In this document: positions 20,652 through 29,854 of the stretch, one piece after another | Numbering within the stretch: the first letter of the stretch is position 1 | Layout of the letters: each line of letters begins with the position of its first letter | Source of the DNA: Klebsormidium nitens | Lineage: Eukaryota > Plantae > Klebsormidiophyceae | Direction of reading: 5' to 3' | NCBI GenBank assembly: GCA_000708835.1 | Contig: DF237736.1 | Location: 1 to 32,770 of the forward strand | Length of the DNA stretch: 32,770 nt | Notes under the pieces: model-generated | Seen by the model: only the letters and a program-made list of their open reading frames with translations | Told to the model about the DNA's origin: nothing | The model's database searches: none | Program-made: the position numbers and the translations under genes

Positions 20652-23191
20652 ATGGCAAAATGTCCATTTGCCTTCACGCCCGGTTCTGAAGCGACTGCTG
20701 CTGCCAATATGAAGGATATCGCAGCTACGAAGTGCCCCTACTTGGTTGAGAACAGGGACAAAATTGTGCATGTAGAAAAGAAGAGTGATGCTGAAGAGAA
20801 GCCAGGTTTTTGCCCCTATGGCTTTGGGGGTGCACCTCAGTGGACGGAGGGGTCTGTCCATATGGCTTCGGACGCACGATTAACGTTTCGGACACGGCCG
20901 ACAGTCTGAGCTCACTTAGTGTAGACGGACACAGCCTGGTTGAAGAGGAGGCCAGGGTTGAGGGCCGGAGTTCTGAGCCAAGGTGTCCGATGGGTTATGA
21001 TTCGGACACCGTCAAAGTCAGGCGCCTGACGTGCCTCGGCTGCAAAACGCTGCTTTTCAACACCGTGCGCATCCTGCCGTGTCGACACCTCTTCTGCAAC
21101 AGCTGTGCCGTCCGGTTGGACGCCTGCGGATTGTGCGGTGGGGAGAAGCAGTCCTTGGAGCAGGACGATGAGACGAGAATGCTGGACCGCAACGTGAGCT
21201 ACTTTATCGAAAAGTATGCTCGACGGAGAAAGAAGGACGCTCAGGGCACCCCCGCGGAAGCACAGGAGGCTAGCGGCCAATCAGAAGGGGGCACCAGTAG
21301 CAGCACCCAGGATCTGTCCCTGGAGCAAGGAGGTCTTCTTTTGCAGCTGGCGATGAGAGTACGTTTCATGACTGAGCACAACTTCCCCAGTAAATATGAT
21401 ACATCTTCTCATTGCCTGCGCCGCTGCTCCTGAGTGAGGGGTCCTGTTGGGGACTGGAAACTGTCAGCTTCTTGAACTTCCGGTCCTATCATCCATGATT
21501 GGGTCCTTGGTGCCAATTTATAGCTGCTGTTCATTCTGTCTGGTCAAAATTCCTAATCGTTGACAAAACTGGTCCTTCCCCCCTGGAATAAGTTGCGTGC
21601 TCACTGTTTAATAGTCAGGCTGAATGACACGGTGGCGTTGCTTGAAGTTGGTTGTAACGTTGGTGCTACATGTGCTCAGCCCCCCAGCAACAGGCGTCTG
21701 ACGTCATCAGCTGGCAGCCTTGGTCGACACAGAGCGCAATGCTTATTAGCGCAGGTACTGAAATTCGTCTGTCTCTGCAGGCTTATAATGGTCGAAATAA
21801 TGAGAGCTCCATCCACTTGCTCAAGCTCTGCGAAGAGGACTTGAGGAGCGCTTTGGCTGAAAGAAGGACCTCAGCCAAAAGTACTCTGTCAGCTTGGTGC
21901 CATAGCAGGCGCACGAGGGGATGTGTATCGGAGCTCGCGAACATGGTTGGAGCTGGTCCAGGAAAAAAATGCAGAGGTCAGTTCCCGAAGTTTGCTCGAA
22001 AGAGCGAAGCTCCCTTATCCTTCCAGAGGACAAGAGGGCCTGGCAAGCCTGAGCATCATTGTTGCCCCTCATGTTTACTTATGCAACTGTTCGTTTGTCT
22101 GTAAGGACAGGTTACTCAAGTGCAACTCCTTCCTGGATTGGCTTTTCAATAGTTAGTGGTTTCCATAGAATTCTTACATTTGATCCGTTGGCCTTCTCGT
22201 CTCTCAGATTGTCCATGATCTGTCGGTTGCATACAACAAGCTGGGCGACCTGCACTACCTAGCCAAGCGACCAGATGAAGCGCGGGAAGAGTACTTGAGG
22301 GCGCGGACAAAGCTGATTCCACAGCATCGCAGGTAGGCAGCTTTCTGTGTTCCGCTGACTGATGTCAAGATCCGAGCAGGACTTGGAAAGCTGTGCTTTG
22401 AAGATGGCAACAGTCTTGGCAGTACAGCAATGATGATTCTAGTTCAGACTTGGATGCGGATGATCCACAACATCAACCGTTCCAGTGTCCCCAGTTTGTC
22501 ACGTGCATTCTTACTTACCAGTGTCTCAGCGGTTCTCGTCCCTCCCTCTTTCCATGCAATGGTGTTAAGTCTCTCGGGAACGCAGGTTGTCTTTGTTGCA
22601 AGTACGCTACTGCTCTACGTTCCCCGTACATTAGGTCATCACCTCTACTCTCAATATCTCCTTCAGGTCCTCGATCTGGTCGTGTCTTACACGAAAGTTG
22701 CTGACCTGGACCGCGCTTCAAAGAAGGACAGAGCAGCAGGGGCGCACTTCCACGAGGCTGCAAAGGTGGCTGCACAGCTGGGGCAGAGACGGGAGGAGTA
22801 CAGTGGGGCCCTCGAGCAGAAGGTAGGCATTTATAGAATGAACACTCTCAGTCCATTCGTTCCACTGAACGAGAGACCGTCAAAAAAGCCCCTCGTGCTT
22901 CTGACGTTGATTATGTTCGTGGACTGGAGCTCTTGCTTATGATGTTATACAAGGGCCCTTGCGATATTGTTGAAGCTTCAATGTTTTCGTCTGCTCAGGT
23001 TTCTGGGTGCAAACTAGTCGACTTTTCACCATCTTTGGCTTCTCGTCTGTAAATCACTGCTGAAGTGGACCTAGTTTATTTTGCAGCGACTGGCCTTGCT
23101 TGCCTTCATTGGAGCACAATTGCAAGGACTCAGGAAAGAATGCCCATTGGGACAAGACGAAGCGTACATTCGTAGAGTTGGCCCGCACTAG
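20652..23191 (+). pseudogene. NCA1: NCA1-like (NO CATALASE ACTIVITY 1) RING-finger + TPR catalase chaperone; frameshifted, so either a pseudogene or assembly errors
   Basis: Exons 20652-21358, 21781-21976, 22208-22332, 22667-22822, 23087-23191 (GT-AG). It matches plant NCA1 as I recall it along its length: repeated N-terminal CP(F/Y) motifs, CPMGYDS, C3HC4 RING CLGC..PCRHLFCNSC..CGLC, DLSLEQGGLLLQLAMR, LCQLGAIAG..GD, IVHDLSVAYNKLGDLHY, VLDLVVSYTKVADLDR, ALEQKRL. Exons 1-3 (707, 196, 125 nt) each break frame although each junction needs phase 0. Confidence 0.8.
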
Positions 23192-24184: not shown

Positions 24185-24898
24185 CTATTCCTCGCTTTTC
24201 GGTTGTCCGTCTCTCAAACGTTCACCATAGATGCTCTTTGATTGTCCATCCAGTAGTATTTTTTCCAAGTCAGCAGCTATTGCTGCCCGCCGCTCAGGAG
24301 TCATTAACACGCCTTTGTTCGATAACAACCGAGTCGTCTCAGAAAGGTACGCTTCGAACTCCTCAGAAGTCATCTGCGCAGCATACAAGGGGTATAGTCA
24401 GAAAACCAGAGATGGATGATTAGGGAATAACGAGAAGAGAAGCAGGCTGCCTTGAAAGTTGAAAATAGCAGTCTAGAACCATGTAGAGCAGGTCAAGGTG
24501 TCTAGCTTTCAAGATCAAGTCCGTACAGAGTCGGGAAAGTACAGCTGCTGAGCAACTTACGAAGTACGAGTTCGCAATTTTGTACAGTCATAAAGGGACG
24601 AGGTAACGATACTCGGGATCCGTCACTAGAATAAGAAGCACGTATCCAACCAGATTGAACAGCTTGTCTGCAGCCTGCATCGACCACATTCCCCAAGTCG
24701 TCCTCACAATCTTTCACTCACCTCGGGTTGAGGCTGCTCCAAACTGTCGTCTGCGGCCGTACCAACTTGTTGCCGATTCCCGTTTGCGCCTCGGGCCCTT
24801 GATAAGCGCCTTGCTTTAAGAATCGCCTCGTTCTCTCTGTATAAAAATAAGACGGCCTTATGACACTTGACGGCTTTCTGCTTATTCCAGAATGCTGA
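24185..24898 (-). other. Two additional spliceable exons (24898-24722 and 24373-24185) downstream of the NTPase-REase stop
   Basis: Strong donor GG|GTGAGT at 25145/25144 overlapping the TGA, acceptor ttgcag at 24899, donor GAG|GTGAGT at 24722/24721, and acceptor gcgcag at 24374. Read in phase 0 the two exons give an open 121-aa peptide ending MTSEEFEAYLSETTRLL...KSEE*. Confidence 0.45.
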
Positions 24899-25140
24899 CT
24901 GCAACAGGGTGGAAGTCGGGAGTTGTAGAGCCACGATACACAGGGGCAGCAATATAAGGAAGGCCTTCTTTCAACCCGTACTTTCAACCCGTAAGTGCTG
25001 GGAAGTCAGAGCATAAGACTTGAAAGCCCGAACTCGACAAGGAAGCAGAGTTAAGGGGCAAACTGCTTCCCCACGCTTCTTCAAAGGTTGGAGCCTTGCA
25101 AACGCAGAATGGCAGCCATCAAAGAGCAGCTTCTTTCGAC

Positions 25141-28100
25141 TCACCCTGCTAATGGCCGAATGTCGCCAAAGCAGCCAAGGAACCCTTCCATCGCGTCTCC
25201 ATCGACCACAATCATCGGTGGCTTGCAATTTTTCATCGCTTCCTCTGCTTCTTTCTTCCTATCTAAACGGGATGTTGTGATATAAAAGACTCTGAGGTTC
25301 GGGGCTTTGGGACCTTTCGAGATGTTTGTGTGTTGCTGTAAGACTGTTTTTACTGCATTCTTTCCCCCTGTTCGTTTGCAACTGAAGATGTTAAGCGATA
25401 CCTCGCCGGTCTCTCCCAGCACTCGGGTGACATGTAGGTCAGCCGCTGTGCAGTCCTTCCCGCTTGCATAAGGATCCATTCTAAAGACCAGATTTAAATC
25501 GAGATATGACCTCGACAGCGGCTGGTTTCTTTCGTAGGGTTTGACTTCGACTAACCCGTCTGCGGGCACTTGCCATGTGTAGGCGTTATCGATCAAAGGA
25601 TCCCTCATGTACTGAAAGACTGACAAAAGCCTGACCTCAACCTCCTGCAACAAAAGGCTTCGAGTCAGAGCTGACTTGCTTCCGAGAGCGATGCTTCGCC
25701 ATGAGTGCAGTCACAGGGTCAGGACCAGGCACTACATGAGCAAACAGCTTCACGATGAGGCCCAACCCTTGTCCTCCTACTGACGTCTACTTTCCTTCTT
25801 CTGCGCTCCATCAAAACAGAGTCCAAGCAGCTTCCTGGAAAACCTCGCGTTTTCGGATGGCGGAGCGAATGCATACTCCAGCATCCATGACGTTTAGAGT
25901 TCCAAAGATTCGAGCACCTTTCGACAGATCCAACAGAAACGTGGATTGGGTTAAGAAAAAGAAACCATGACGCTCAGCAGATCGAGTCTCGTCGTGGAGA
26001 CAAGCTCAGCGTACCTCGTTCAAAGTCGATTCTGCAGCAATAGCTGTGGGGTAGAGATCTCTCAGGCGTTTTCGCACGCTCTCCGGAGCCGATGCTGCCC
26101 CTGTGTGCAACCGCTCCAACTCCAGGACGAGCCACGAGAGCACCGCTTCCCTCGCAGACACCATCTCCTCCAGACGCGTTCCGTCAAGCGCTCCACCGCA
26201 GCCTAAGTCCCATAGCAGGCCTAACCCTGGCACGCTGTCAAGCTGCCCCAATCTTTTGAGCTCCCGGATAACTAGCTGCAGCAGGTAATACGGCATGGTG
26301 AGCCGTTGAACCGACTGCTCCTCTAAAACCTGTCGAGTCCCCAGCCTATCTTTCGCCCCTTCCTTCACCTCCTTCACCTTCTTATGGATCAGCAATCGTC
26401 TTTTCGCCTTCGCTGCTTCCGTGAGGTACGGCATGGTCAGCTCCAAAATCTGTTCTAGCTTCCGCTCAGGGTCTCGGCCCACTAGCATTGTGGTCTGCTC
26501 GATCGGGTAGGCTACCAAAACCATGCTAACGAGAACTTTCGCAACCTCCACCCCCCCCCAGCGCTCTATCAGGTCGCTTCCCCTGAACCATATCTCAACC
26601 TCTTCTTCCACATACGGCTCCATGATTGCCGCCAGCTTGGCGTAGATCCCGGGGGCTGCAACCTCTGGTAGCCGCTCCCAAAATGCAGGTCTGACAGCCG
26701 CTCTCGCCACTGCCATAAGATAACGGGGAACGCCCCCAGCTTTCGCAAGAAGGAGGCGCACGGGACCGCTATAAACGAACTCGAAGATCTTGTCGGCTTC
26801 AGAGGGGTGCTTTGAGAGCATCACGCTTTCCACGAAGGCGGCTGGCAGCTCCCCGTCGTCCCGCAGCTCCAAGAGGTCGTGCATCTTGGCGGCGCCGTAC
26901 TCAGTCAGCTCGAAGGAGCGTTGCACCTTGTGCAGGTTGGTCCCCATTGGTATAAACATGAGAGCTGCAATCAGAGAAGCGGCAGGAAGGTTGGTCATCT
27001 TATATTACTAAACGTCCCAATGGAAGCAGCCAGCATCACACAAGGTTTAACACTTCAGAGCTGATAGACAAGATAAACAAAGCACAATCTGCATCACATA
27101 GAAGTAACTGCCAGATAGATGCTCTCTGCAGCGCTTCACAGCGTGCAGAATATTGAGAATGAACCTTGACACCCTAAAAAGGCAGCCCGCTACTCTCAGC
27201 AACCGACCTATCAAAATCAAACGGAAGCCAATGTGGTTCTGTCCAGACTGGCTTAGAGAGCAACGAATACTTAACATCAGATGCTAACGGCTGCATCACT
27301 GGAAGTGCCCATAATCTTTCTCCAGAAAGCGGGGTGGAAGCACATCTTACCATGGAAATCCTTGCCAGAGTACAGGGACTTGTAGTCGCAGACGGCTTTT
27401 AGGATTGTCTTCAGCGCCGTCTGCGGATCAATCTTGCAGAGTCGCTCCAGTTTAGATGCCGCCAGCTGAATCTCGTCCATGACTATGATGCTTGCTAGCA
27501 CGGACTGCTCAGGGAAGCCTCCTTGTTCGCGGACCAGTTTCGCCCGCAGGCGGCACACGTTCTTGATGGTAAATAGCTGCTCCAGCCTCTGCAAGCAGCA
27601 AAAGGAAGTCAGACACATGCCTTCATCAACCAGCTCGCGGAGTCAAAAGCAAACCAGACTATGAGAGCTGCTACGACCTTATTCTGCAACCTTGATTGGA
27701 CTAAAAGTGGAGACAACCTCACTGACAACCCTGCTTAGTGAGGAGCATCTGACACATCACCCCGTCGCAGCAACCTGGATAAACCCTTCCAAGTCTTCCA
27801 GAGAAGACTGCCAAAGCATCAACCAATATCCAACTTATCTTATGAATCCTGCCGTCATCACCTAGGGTCTTTTAGTGAGCTCAACATACTGCGCCGCAAA
27901 AGAATGAGTGCATATTCTCACCTTGGTTGTGATGACTGTCCGCAGTTCTACCGCCGTGAAGTTGAAAAAGAGGGAGGCGTACAGGCGGAGCCCAATCGCC
28001 CGATCTGCTGCCTTGGCATCGAAGCGCCCGTTGGTGCAGTCAGCCAGTGTGAATTCCCCCCCGGTGCCATTGAACTCCATGTAAGCGTAGCTGATACGGC

Positions 28101-29452
28101 CTACAGGAATCACAAGTGGTCGATAAACATCAAGAAAAGGAGAGAACATTACCAGGCACGCAACAGGTGCACTTGCAGAGCAGCTCTGAATACCCTTTGC
28201 TAAGAGGAGTTTGTTGACAGGCCAACATAGTGGAGCTGCTTAGAGCTTTTTCTCACCACTGTCCAAGAGGCGGACGCCGTCTTCCAGCTCCCGCACATCA
28301 ATGTTGATCTTCAGGTTCTTCAGGGCCGCAAGAAGATCCCGATGCTCCAGCAGTAAACCAGCTAGGAGTCCCACACTGCCTTTCGTGATCTCCTCACCCA
28401 ACCTGGTCTTGCCAATCCCAGGACCTCCTTGCCATGGAGACGCGTGAACTTGGTCCCGCGGGATCCTGCGCCCTGCATAGAAGTCATTGGTGCGGAGCGT
28501 AGCCATCAGCTGCAGAGAAGGGTAACTGCATCAGTCACAAGAAGATTGCCAAAACCTCTGTTTAGGACCCCCAGAAGTCAGACTGCCTGCAGGAAATTTA
28601 TCGTAGACAGAGGAAGAGACAACTGTTCAGCATTCATCCATAGATGCCCCTTGGAGGTCTTTGAACAAGCAAAGGAACAAGGACGTGAAAGTAGTAGGCC
28701 TCTGAAGTCCAATCACGAGGGACTTACTTCTTGAAGAACTTCTAAGACTTCTGCTTCTCTGCCCACAAACATCGAAACCTCTGGCTCCGGAGGGACTCTC
28801 TGAAGATGTTGCGATAGGATCGCATGAACAGCTTCCAAGTCACGGCAGGAGCGCAGCCTGACACATAGGGCAAGCGAAAAGTAAGGACCATAGAGGAGGG
28901 AGAAGTGGTGCGCCGCTACGCAATTGACCTTTGAGTGCAATGATGGACTAAGCATCAGCTGTAGACTGCAGGATGCTTTCTTACGCAACTACAGCAATGT
29001 TCCCTGTCAGTCAAATCATCAACTGCAGTCTACTTTCAACAAGCACCAGGGGAGGCGAAATTGAAATTCACAGGGAATGAGCCTCAGAAACCCTAAGAAC
29101 CTTCTGAAGTGACTAATTCTTAGGAGTCCTACCTCCTGATGATTCCCTGGGTATCTTTGCCCTCAGCATCGCCTGCAAAGAAACCGCCCTTCTCAGCGGT
29201 GACTCTCAGCCTATTAGCTGCTACCGTCTGGACATGGACTCTTTCTCGCAGCAGACTTTGCCTACCTAGACTGACAGGAGGTGGTGGTGGTGGTTTTACT
29301 CGAGAACGGAAGAGTGGCGGATGTACAAGACTGTGCAGACCTGCTGCAAAGCACCCGACAGGAGTGAGTCTGCAAGAGAGAGTGGATGGGGAAACCTCAT
29401 GTCTGTGTGAGAAGGGACGTGCTTGAACCACCTGTGTGGCTGGGCACGACAT
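25141..29452 (-). CDS. Crinkler/RHS (CR)-type P-loop NTPase + restriction-endonuclease-like protein with a transit-peptide-like N-terminus; 7 exons, 857 aa
   Basis: Exons (minus): 29452-29133, 28857-28728, 28509-28257, 28100-27922, 27588-27351, 26964-26015, 25644-25141. All introns are GT-AG and phase-compatible, total 2574 nt with no stop. Motifs: FVGREAEV, Walker A GGPGIGKT (28428-28405), Walker B IIVMDEIQ, MFIPMGT, GGVPRYL, GTRLEEMV, and C-terminal ASG..AADLH...IFSCK (PD-(D/E)xK-like). The start codon is inferred. Confidence 0.7.
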
Positions 29453-29854
29453 TGCGAAGACTTGTGATACTATTGCAGTAGCGACTGTCTGAAAGCCTGC
29501 ATCTAGGCAGCTAGGGTGGTCAAGCGGCACCTGGTGGAAGCAGCCACTGCAACTTGTGCAAGTTCTCAGGCTTCCAACTTTTCTCAAGTTGGAGTGGAGT
29601 CAGGAGTCGAGACTCGAGAGTCGGTCCTCTGCAATGAAAAAGCCTCGGCCGATCGGAAGGCTTTTCAGATCGTGGTTTTGGCCATAAAAACAACGATCGA
29701 AAAATCCGGGAAGTCGCAAAACTCGATTTTTCGAAGCCCAGTGTGGAAAGGCTTTCCGAGCGATTCCTCAAGAAAGAGGGCTTCTCCAAAAAGCCCGGAA
29801 CCACGAAGTCGCTCAGTGTGGAGGCCGCCCAGGAGTCCTCTGCAATCTACATGA

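Follow-up and report, generated by a model that had tools for sequence, protein, structure and literature searches.

CR (Crinkler/RHS) proteins join a header domain to enzymatic C-termini, among which a review names the combination of a nucleoside triphosphatase (NTPase), a helix-turn-helix (HTH) and a restriction endonuclease (REase) domain (Zhang et al. 2016, via review PMC5289972). Here we describe a gene on the minus strand of contig DF237736.1 of the alga Klebsormidium nitens (assembly GCA_000708835.1), of which positions 1 to 32,770 form the window of this analysis and supply all coordinates below. Phytophthora Crinklers (CRNs) and the Mucoromycota 'Crinkler family' have parts of the same order and size, namely a P-loop NTPase, a helical linker and a small C-terminal nuclease-like domain; they likewise place a variable N-terminal module before a constant enzymatic core, and they evolve fast. 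On the other hand, the CR headers (Ubl/LxLFLAK or alpha-helical) are absent here and an 85-amino-acid (aa), low-complexity, Pro-rich, presequence-like leader stands in their stead, followed within about 50 residues by an FVGRE motif. The encoded protein also differs from CR proteins in having no detectable sequence similarity to any of them, in its D...SxK catalytic motif, and in that its gene, of nine exons (the ninth predicted), has one paralogue whereas CR proteins form a large family. Since the header is missing, this is not a CR protein in the strict sense, although it probably works like, and descends from, a CR C-terminal module.

Nuclear-encoded nucleases of organelles in the green lineage include the DPD1 exonuclease, the MOC1 resolvase and MSH1 with its GIY-YIG domain, for all of which localisation and function have been demonstrated. 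These, too, are products of nuclear genes with an N-terminal presequence-like leader before a nucleic-acid enzyme, but their folds and families are unrelated to the present one, and for the K. nitens gene localisation and function are only inferred. Our overall reading is that of an expressed and spliced gene for a protein of about 900-957 aa, which would consist of a presequence-like leader, an AAA+/STAND NTPase near the Crinkler fold, a helical linker and a probable nuclease with a short tail. Taken as a whole, with organelle import counted as the likeliest single role for the leader, this statement falls a little short of even confidence, while its parts differ considerably in strength.

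Exon structure and transcripts

The original prediction, made from the sequence of the window, had proposed seven exons on the minus strand and an 857-codon product. Re-derived from the sequence, these exons (29452-29133, 28857-28728, 28509-28257, 28100-27922, 27588-27351, 26964-26015 and 25644-25141) add up to 2574 nt, with GT-AG at every intron, consistent phases and no in-frame stop; this arithmetic check reproduced all boundaries exactly and located FVGRE, GGPGIGKT, IIVMDEIQ, GGVPR and D...SCK where they had been placed. The C-terminus of that model turned out to be wrong, in that the main mRNA lacks an extra intron (25144-24837) and continues into exon 8 and probably exon 9.

Transcript evidence came from public runs that are not recorded as RNA and that we take for transcriptome assemblies in view of their intron-free contigs. 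Twenty such runs from seven studies contain 0.23-0.72 of the words sampled from the 4.3-kb stretch, at least half in 18 of the 20, and exons make up 0.60 of that stretch. Contigs from four runs of four studies, compared at 100% identity with positions 24800-29800, carry all six proposed introns as junctions. Among these is the exon 1-2 junction (29133/28857), which had been named beforehand as the place to look for skipping of exon 1 and which joins the two exons in four of four runs. The junction of intron 7 (24836/25145) is likewise present in all four, at a depth of 82-329, while a contig that retains this intron (24808-25174) reaches a depth of 11-35, about one tenth of the spliced form. 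Because the TGA of the seven-exon model (25143-25141) overlaps the donor GT of intron 7 (25144-25143) and the spliced form is some ten times deeper, the 857-aa product can be that of a minor intron-retention isoform only.

The same exon 7-8 junction and a homologous tail (...RPLAG|ENESLQKARR...) occur in a protein, P0004, of the paralogous K. nitens locus L003 (DF237584.1, 9025-15523), whose annotation splits it into two partial genes, KFL_006350020 and KFL_006350010. Downstream, exon 8 ends in a strong donor (CCCGAG|GTGAGT at 24722/24721) and an acceptor (...GCGCAG|ATG at 24374/24373) would open a ninth exon; both putative signals are identical in strain L001. The main open reading frame (ORF) thus comprises 900 aa if it ends after exon 8, and 957 aa with the predicted exon 9. 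One contig per run extends past one end of the 24800-29800 stretch, which we take to be the 24800 side, since none of the 5' contigs listed extends beyond 29626. The K. nitens gene has eight exons verified by transcript junctions and, judging from splice signals, probably a ninth, and that it is a real protein-coding gene we regard as practically certain. Its features are the following.

29453-29626, minus strand: 5' untranslated region (UTR) to the limit of the transcript contigs (contig ends 29626, 29586, 29551 and 29464)
29133-29452, minus strand: exon 1, with start ATG at 29452, 106 2/3 codons and a GT donor at its end; junction in four of four runs
29198-29452, minus strand: presequence-like leader by composition, residues 1-85, ending ...RLRVTA before EKGGF
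28728-28857, minus strand: exon 2, conserved segment before the NTPase, with FVGRE at its end (28769-28755); transcripts, dN/dS (ratio of nonsynonymous to synonymous substitution rates) 0.16
28257-28509, minus strand: exon 3, with Walker A GGPGIGKT (28428-28405); transcripts and motif
27922-28100, minus strand: exon 4, NTPase core between Walker A and Walker B; 81% aa identity with the paralogue, dN/dS 0.18
27351-27588, minus strand: exon 5, with Walker B IIVMDEIQ (27489-27466); transcripts and motif, dN/dS 0.26
26015-26964, minus strand: exon 6, remainder of the NTPase and its lid with GGVPRYL (26737-26717), then the helical linker (possible HTH position); transcripts and motif
25145-25644, minus strand: exon 7, candidate PD-(D/E)xK-like nuclease domain with AADLHV (25446-25429) and NIFSCK (25392-25375); 75% identity with the paralogue
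24837-25144, minus strand: intron 7 (GT..AG), whose donor overlaps the stop codon of the seven-exon model; spliced out in four of four runs
24722-24836, minus strand: exon 8, basic and acidic tail (…ENEAILKARRLSRARG…QPQPE); transcripts, homologous tail in P0004
24185-24373, minus strand: predicted exon 9, 62 codons and a TAG stop (24187-24185), from splice signals and identity in strain L001

Two further transcript forms were observed. An alternative acceptor of exon 3 at 28472, 37 nt downstream of the canonical 28509, occurs beside the canonical form in contigs of three of the four runs. Loss of these 37 nt shifts the frame and brings in a stop after 37 codons, ahead of the P-loop. The resulting isoform is unproductive, and it could reflect regulated unproductive splicing. 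Besides, one contig of run X3 departs from the genome at 29551, and its 30 unmatched letters are absent from the window; with a possible acceptor (ttgcag) at 29547, it may represent an alternative upstream 5' exon beyond the window or a chimera, and we treated it as chimeric.

Start codon and N-terminal leader

Whether the leader belongs to the protein depends on where translation starts. The ATG at 29452 lies well within the transcript, as contigs reach 29626, and is the only ATG that reaches the exon 1 donor in the frame of exon 2; the sole ATG upstream of it, at 29502, opens a 10-codon, out-of-frame upstream ORF (uORF; 29470-29502, minus strand), which is conserved base for base in strain L002. 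In an alternative account, exon 1 would be a 5' leader or uORF that does not code for the functional protein, and translation would begin with the MFVGRE Met or with that of exon 3, as annotated for KFL_006350020. That annotation speaks for it, as do the almost neutral evolution of exon 1 and the frame-breaking indels that exon 1 carries both in strain L002 and in the paralogue. The evidence from exon 2 argues otherwise: against the paralogue, its codons 1-29, upstream of the sole internal Met (M-FVGRE), differ at 0.76 of synonymous (pS) versus 0.24 of nonsynonymous (pN) sites, and the paralogue has Ser at the position of that Met and an exon 2 homologue devoid of any ATG. Given this purifying selection upstream of the internal Met and a paralogous exon 2 without an ATG, translation of the start of exon 2, with its conserved FVGRE segment, is possible from exon 1 only, and the start annotated for the paralogue, in exon 3, has to be rejected because its exon 2 segment under purifying selection needs an exon 1 start. 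Moreover, the 106-codon open frame of exon 1 arises in just 1.5% of shuffles, a different ATG restores the same downstream frame in L002, and the frameshift in the paralogue is an extra A in an A-run, which could be a homopolymer error of an early assembly. Rejected by the selection on exon 2 and by ATG 29452 being the sole in-frame start, a merely untranslated exon 1 strikes us as very improbable.

The leader so translated has a distinctive composition. Residues 1-85 contain two acidic residues (D+E), 11 K+R, five H, 14 S+T and 12 P, and the acid depletion is significant (binomial P = 0.0006) relative to the 13% acidic residues in the pooled translations of exons 3-7. The first 20 residues have a charge of +2 on the scale of PMC11581415 and three S/T, and a hydrophobic signal-peptide core is absent (maximum 19-residue Kyte-Doolittle mean 1.19). 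The paralogous leader is similar in make-up (D+E 2 of 83, K+R 10, S+T 15), both leaders end in ...A|EKGGF, and their divergence is high (dN/dS 0.54-0.80; 0.72 for the whole of exon 1). The claim of the original prediction that an acid-poor header occupies an exon of its own, with two acidic residues in 85, was thereby borne out, and its composition is kept in the paralogue. In both proteins, then, the leader is N-terminal, translated, acid-poor, net positive, hydroxylated and free of a hydrophobic core, as expected for a presequence. As this composition is kept without conservation of the sequence, it supports an organelle presequence, which is not to be equated with a localisation result. From composition, the most economical reading would be a presequence for the plastid, more likely than the mitochondrion, cleaved near ...VTA|EKGGF; import of the protein into an organelle as such is a tentative proposal, possible rather than probable.

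Several observations weigh against import. In strain L002, which is 96.8% identical (Logan SRR14092358), a 14-nt deletion in exon 1 (window ~29365-29378; L002:~230-260) puts ATG 29452 out of frame and an ATG at ~29400 into frame, so that the first 32 residues give way to about 10; the paralogous exon 1 is frameshifted by the extra A 20 nt before the donor in the 2014 assembly, possibly through a homopolymer error; and a leader dN/dS of 0.7-0.8 would equally be expected of a functionless, disordered leader. The predictors suggested along with the original prediction (TargetP, LOCALIZER) reportedly recover about half of the true algal plastid proteins and yield about twice as many false positives, so that for algae sequence-based organelle calls are wrong more often than they are right (PMC11581415) and a positive one would be weak evidence; and known, characterised CRNs go to the (host) nucleus (PMC5353544). 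As for the deletion itself, the stretch lost from L002 ends in a CAG that resembles an acceptor.

These data would fit the same NTPase and nuclease-like protein acting in the cytosol or nucleus, as characterised Crinklers and STAND-type immune or conflict NTPases do, with the leader as a disordered basic extension, be it a tail that binds nucleic acid or partners or a regulatory one. Its case draws on the rapid change of the leader, including the replaced N-terminus in a near-identical strain, on the nuclear CRNs, on the low precision of transit-peptide-like composition as a predictor in algae, and on the between-strain pN/pS of 0.42-0.53, which fits a conflict gene. A basic cluster resembling a nuclear localisation signal in exon 6 (KAKRRLLIHKKVK, 26410-26372) would point the same way, yet it is not conserved in the paralogue. 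Against this account stands the acid depletion kept by both paralogues despite free drift (2/85 and 2/83 versus 13%), a classical presequence signature, and no other role of the leader is indicated. We consider a non-imported protein a serious possibility, without going so far as to favour it.

Independently of where the protein goes, exon 1 shows a low dS against the paralogue (29133-29452 versus L003:9025-9334), at ~0.5 below that of exons 2-6 (0.65-1.4), though its dN/dS is near 1. Constraint at the nucleotide level, local gene conversion or small-sample noise could each explain this.

The NTPase half and the C-terminal domain

Searches of the protein were run exon by exon, with the paralogue proteins P0003 (NTPase half) and P0004 (linker, nuclease-like domain and tail) as spliced surrogates. 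The NTPase half contains a Walker A motif of the GxxxxGK[ST] type (GGPGIGKT) and a Walker B motif of the hhhhD[DE] type (IIVMDEIQ), both conserved in the paralogue and separated by a long spacing of about 155 residues. Of the presumed hallmarks of AAA_16/ATPase_2 (PF13191/PF01637) proteins, it has GxxGxGKT and hhhhDE, preceded by an FVGRE-type motif and followed by a GGxPxxL lid. The ESM Atlas contains P0003 with a model of predicted template modelling score (pTM) 0.65. By features, its nearest Atlas clusters are unnamed eukaryotic ones (Mucoromycota, 0.97, with 212 of 256 features in common; Basidiomycota, 0.93), followed by AAA_16, ATPase_2 and NACHT at 0.88-0.89. By structure, the full-length neighbour with the highest score is a 'Crinkler family protein' cluster of Mucoromycota (template modelling score, TM, 0.64 over residues 1-375), 24% of whose members carry the Crinkler header family PF20147, while Pch2/TRIP13, NACHT and Cdc6 clusters reach TM 0.52-0.56. 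The likeness thus extends to STAND and ORC/Cdc6-like AAA+ proteins, from which the present protein differs by its long Walker A-B spacing and by matching no Pfam model at E = 10 as spliced paralogue protein. Taken with the lid and both Walker motifs, these Atlas neighbours make an AAA+/STAND-type P-loop NTPase very likely and tip the balance, with moderate confidence, towards a CR-type module. Of the earlier assignment to the Crinkler/RHS class, a probable kinship of the NTPase half survives, a fungal 'Crinkler family' cluster being its nearest structural neighbour in the ESM Atlas, whereas strict membership does not, as the CR header is absent.

Downstream of the NTPase, the exon 6 linker matched no family in Pfam or PDB sequence searches. 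Every feature neighbour of exon 7 that bears a name in the Atlas is a restriction-endonuclease family, at 0.83-0.90 (BsoBI 0.90, XamI, CfrBI, Mrr_cat and Card1), and the candidate catalytic residues D69, S88 and K90 are invariant between the paralogues (S-V-K in the paralogue, S-C-K in the window). In a low-confidence model, DSSP assigned first a helix, then three strands, a helix, a strand and a last helix; D69 stands at the start of the second strand and S88-x-K90 at the end of the third, and the order would fit the alpha-beta-beta-beta-alpha-beta core of PD-(D/E)xK nucleases. A sub-threshold match of exon 7 to the plant mitoribosomal protein uL30m (PDB, E = 0.016) was rejected as chance, since it fell to 0.18-0.64 with a two-sequence profile. 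The domain, of about 165 aa, may well be a divergent PD-(D/E)xK-type nuclease fold, a reading to which we lean slightly on the basis of its feature neighbours and invariant residues.

A number of results tell against this picture of the enzymatic core. Not one part of the protein is matched by a model of Pfam, NCBIfam, PADLOC or PHROGs or by a sequence of the PDB, and AAA_16, ATPase_2, NACHT and AAA_22 in particular gave no match, either for single exons (Pfam) or for P0003 at E <= 10. The Atlas evidence is a single source without alignment or E-value and concerns the paralogue, which is 62-81% identical, instead of the protein of the window; an AlphaFold2 model of P0003 from a single sequence was unusable, at a predicted local distance difference test (pLDDT) score of 32. 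Exon 7 departs from (D/E)-x-K by a Ser at the second catalytic acid, so that the domain could be inactive or something else, or might conceivably be a variant whose acid has been relocated. Its AlphaFold2 model, from a two-sequence alignment, has pLDDT 37 (below 50 in 153 of 166 residues), and with this poor model Foldseek found nothing in the PDB at E <= 0.001 and the Atlas shape search nothing significant (TM <= 0.52). The Atlas rows Replic_Relax and Transposase_31, presumably members of the PD-(D/E)xK clan, count for little with such a model.

Accordingly one has to consider a protein unrelated to CR, that is, a lineage-specific AAA+/STAND NTPase of independent origin that would end not in a nuclease but, for instance, in a protein- or RNA-binding alpha/beta domain. 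It would account for the lack of any sequence link to CR, REase or NTPase families in the libraries searched, the missing CR header, SxK in place of (D/E)xK, the failed fold model and non-significant fold searches of exon 7, and the TM scores of 0.52-0.56 with generic AAA+, NACHT and Cdc6 folds. It would leave unexplained that structural comparison over the full length puts the NTPase half nearest to a cluster with the Crinkler header family, that the nearest feature clusters are eukaryotic (Mucoromycota and Basidiomycota), and that the named language-model neighbours of exon 7 are without exception restriction-endonuclease families; besides, the order and size of the domains fit the NTPase, HTH and REase arrangement, as described in the review (PMC5289972). 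We therefore regard an unrelated protein as rather unlikely and retain a CR-derived NTPase-nuclease module as the preferred reading.

For this preferred reading we propose that the NTPase, by binding or hydrolysing nucleotide and probably as an oligomer, would gate the C-terminal nuclease, which would act on nucleic acid in the compartment chosen by the leader; targeting, cleavage, ATPase activity and nuclease activity are all inferred properties of the protein.

Evolution and biological implications

As named relatives the protein has only KFL_006350020 and KFL_006350010, both of K. nitens. When exon 6 was compared exhaustively with 1.84 billion protein representatives by phmmer, nothing but Klebsormidium copies came up, barring one match, to a 1459-aa repeat protein with 12 matched stretches, which we dismissed as spurious. 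Protein word searches, a plasmid tblastn, two scans of viral contigs and two of metagenome contigs yielded no relatives, and exon 1 had no Pfam match, PF20147 included, at E <= 1. Going by these searches, the lineage is restricted to Klebsormidium in the collections covered. Ahead of its annotated start the paralogue has counterparts of exon 1 (49% aa identity) and exon 2 (65%), and about 380 nt within its exon-6-equivalent region are an extra intron or insertion. It is the single paralogue found and bears the same leader, so the survey for header swapping that had been suggested along with the original prediction uncovered none between the two loci.

Between these loci, dN/dS amounts to 0.16-0.26 for exons 2-6, and exons 2-7 are under purifying selection. 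In two other strains, exons 2-8 are free of stops and indels, their introns contain indels, and pN/pS is 0.42-0.53. The gene, whose maintenance had been surmised from an intact frame amid degraded neighbouring elements, is expressed and has stayed intact, but it shows the fast evolution often met with in conflict-related genes.

Elsewhere in the window, an ORF at 20810-21430 (plus strand) encodes a C3HC4 RING finger (PF13920, E = 2e-6). No other neighbouring ORF of at least 150 aa has a Pfam match above the family cut-off, a DUF4875 match at 929-1477 being sub-threshold.

Pathogen effectors at work in host nuclei are the best-known representatives of CR/Crinkler NTPase-nuclease modules, and we found no paper that links Crinkler-type proteins to Klebsormidium or to organelle presequences. 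The present work suggests that a streptophyte alga near the land-plant lineage keeps, expresses and splices a probable CR-type module behind a leader resembling an import signal. Even if import proves false, this would still be a clean, transcript-verified, very fast-evolving and lineage-restricted AAA+/STAND-nuclease gene, of a kind that annotation pipelines split or truncate, as exemplified by the paralogue with its two partial gene models starting at the wrong Met. In its most far-reaching form, which on present evidence we deem unlikely, the protein would be a CR-type, NTP-gated nuclease that lost the usual header and gained a plastid or mitochondrial presequence, and that polices, degrades or helps to eliminate organelle DNA. 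If so, a conflict or effector module would be delivered into the alga's own organelle, where foreign DNA, damaged genomes or the turnover of the organelle genome would be its targets, and it would represent the first organelle-resident member of the CR-type class. Import, if true, would offer a handle on an endogenous role of CR proteins in the surveillance or turnover of organelle genomes, and an example of 'header swapping' to a presequence.

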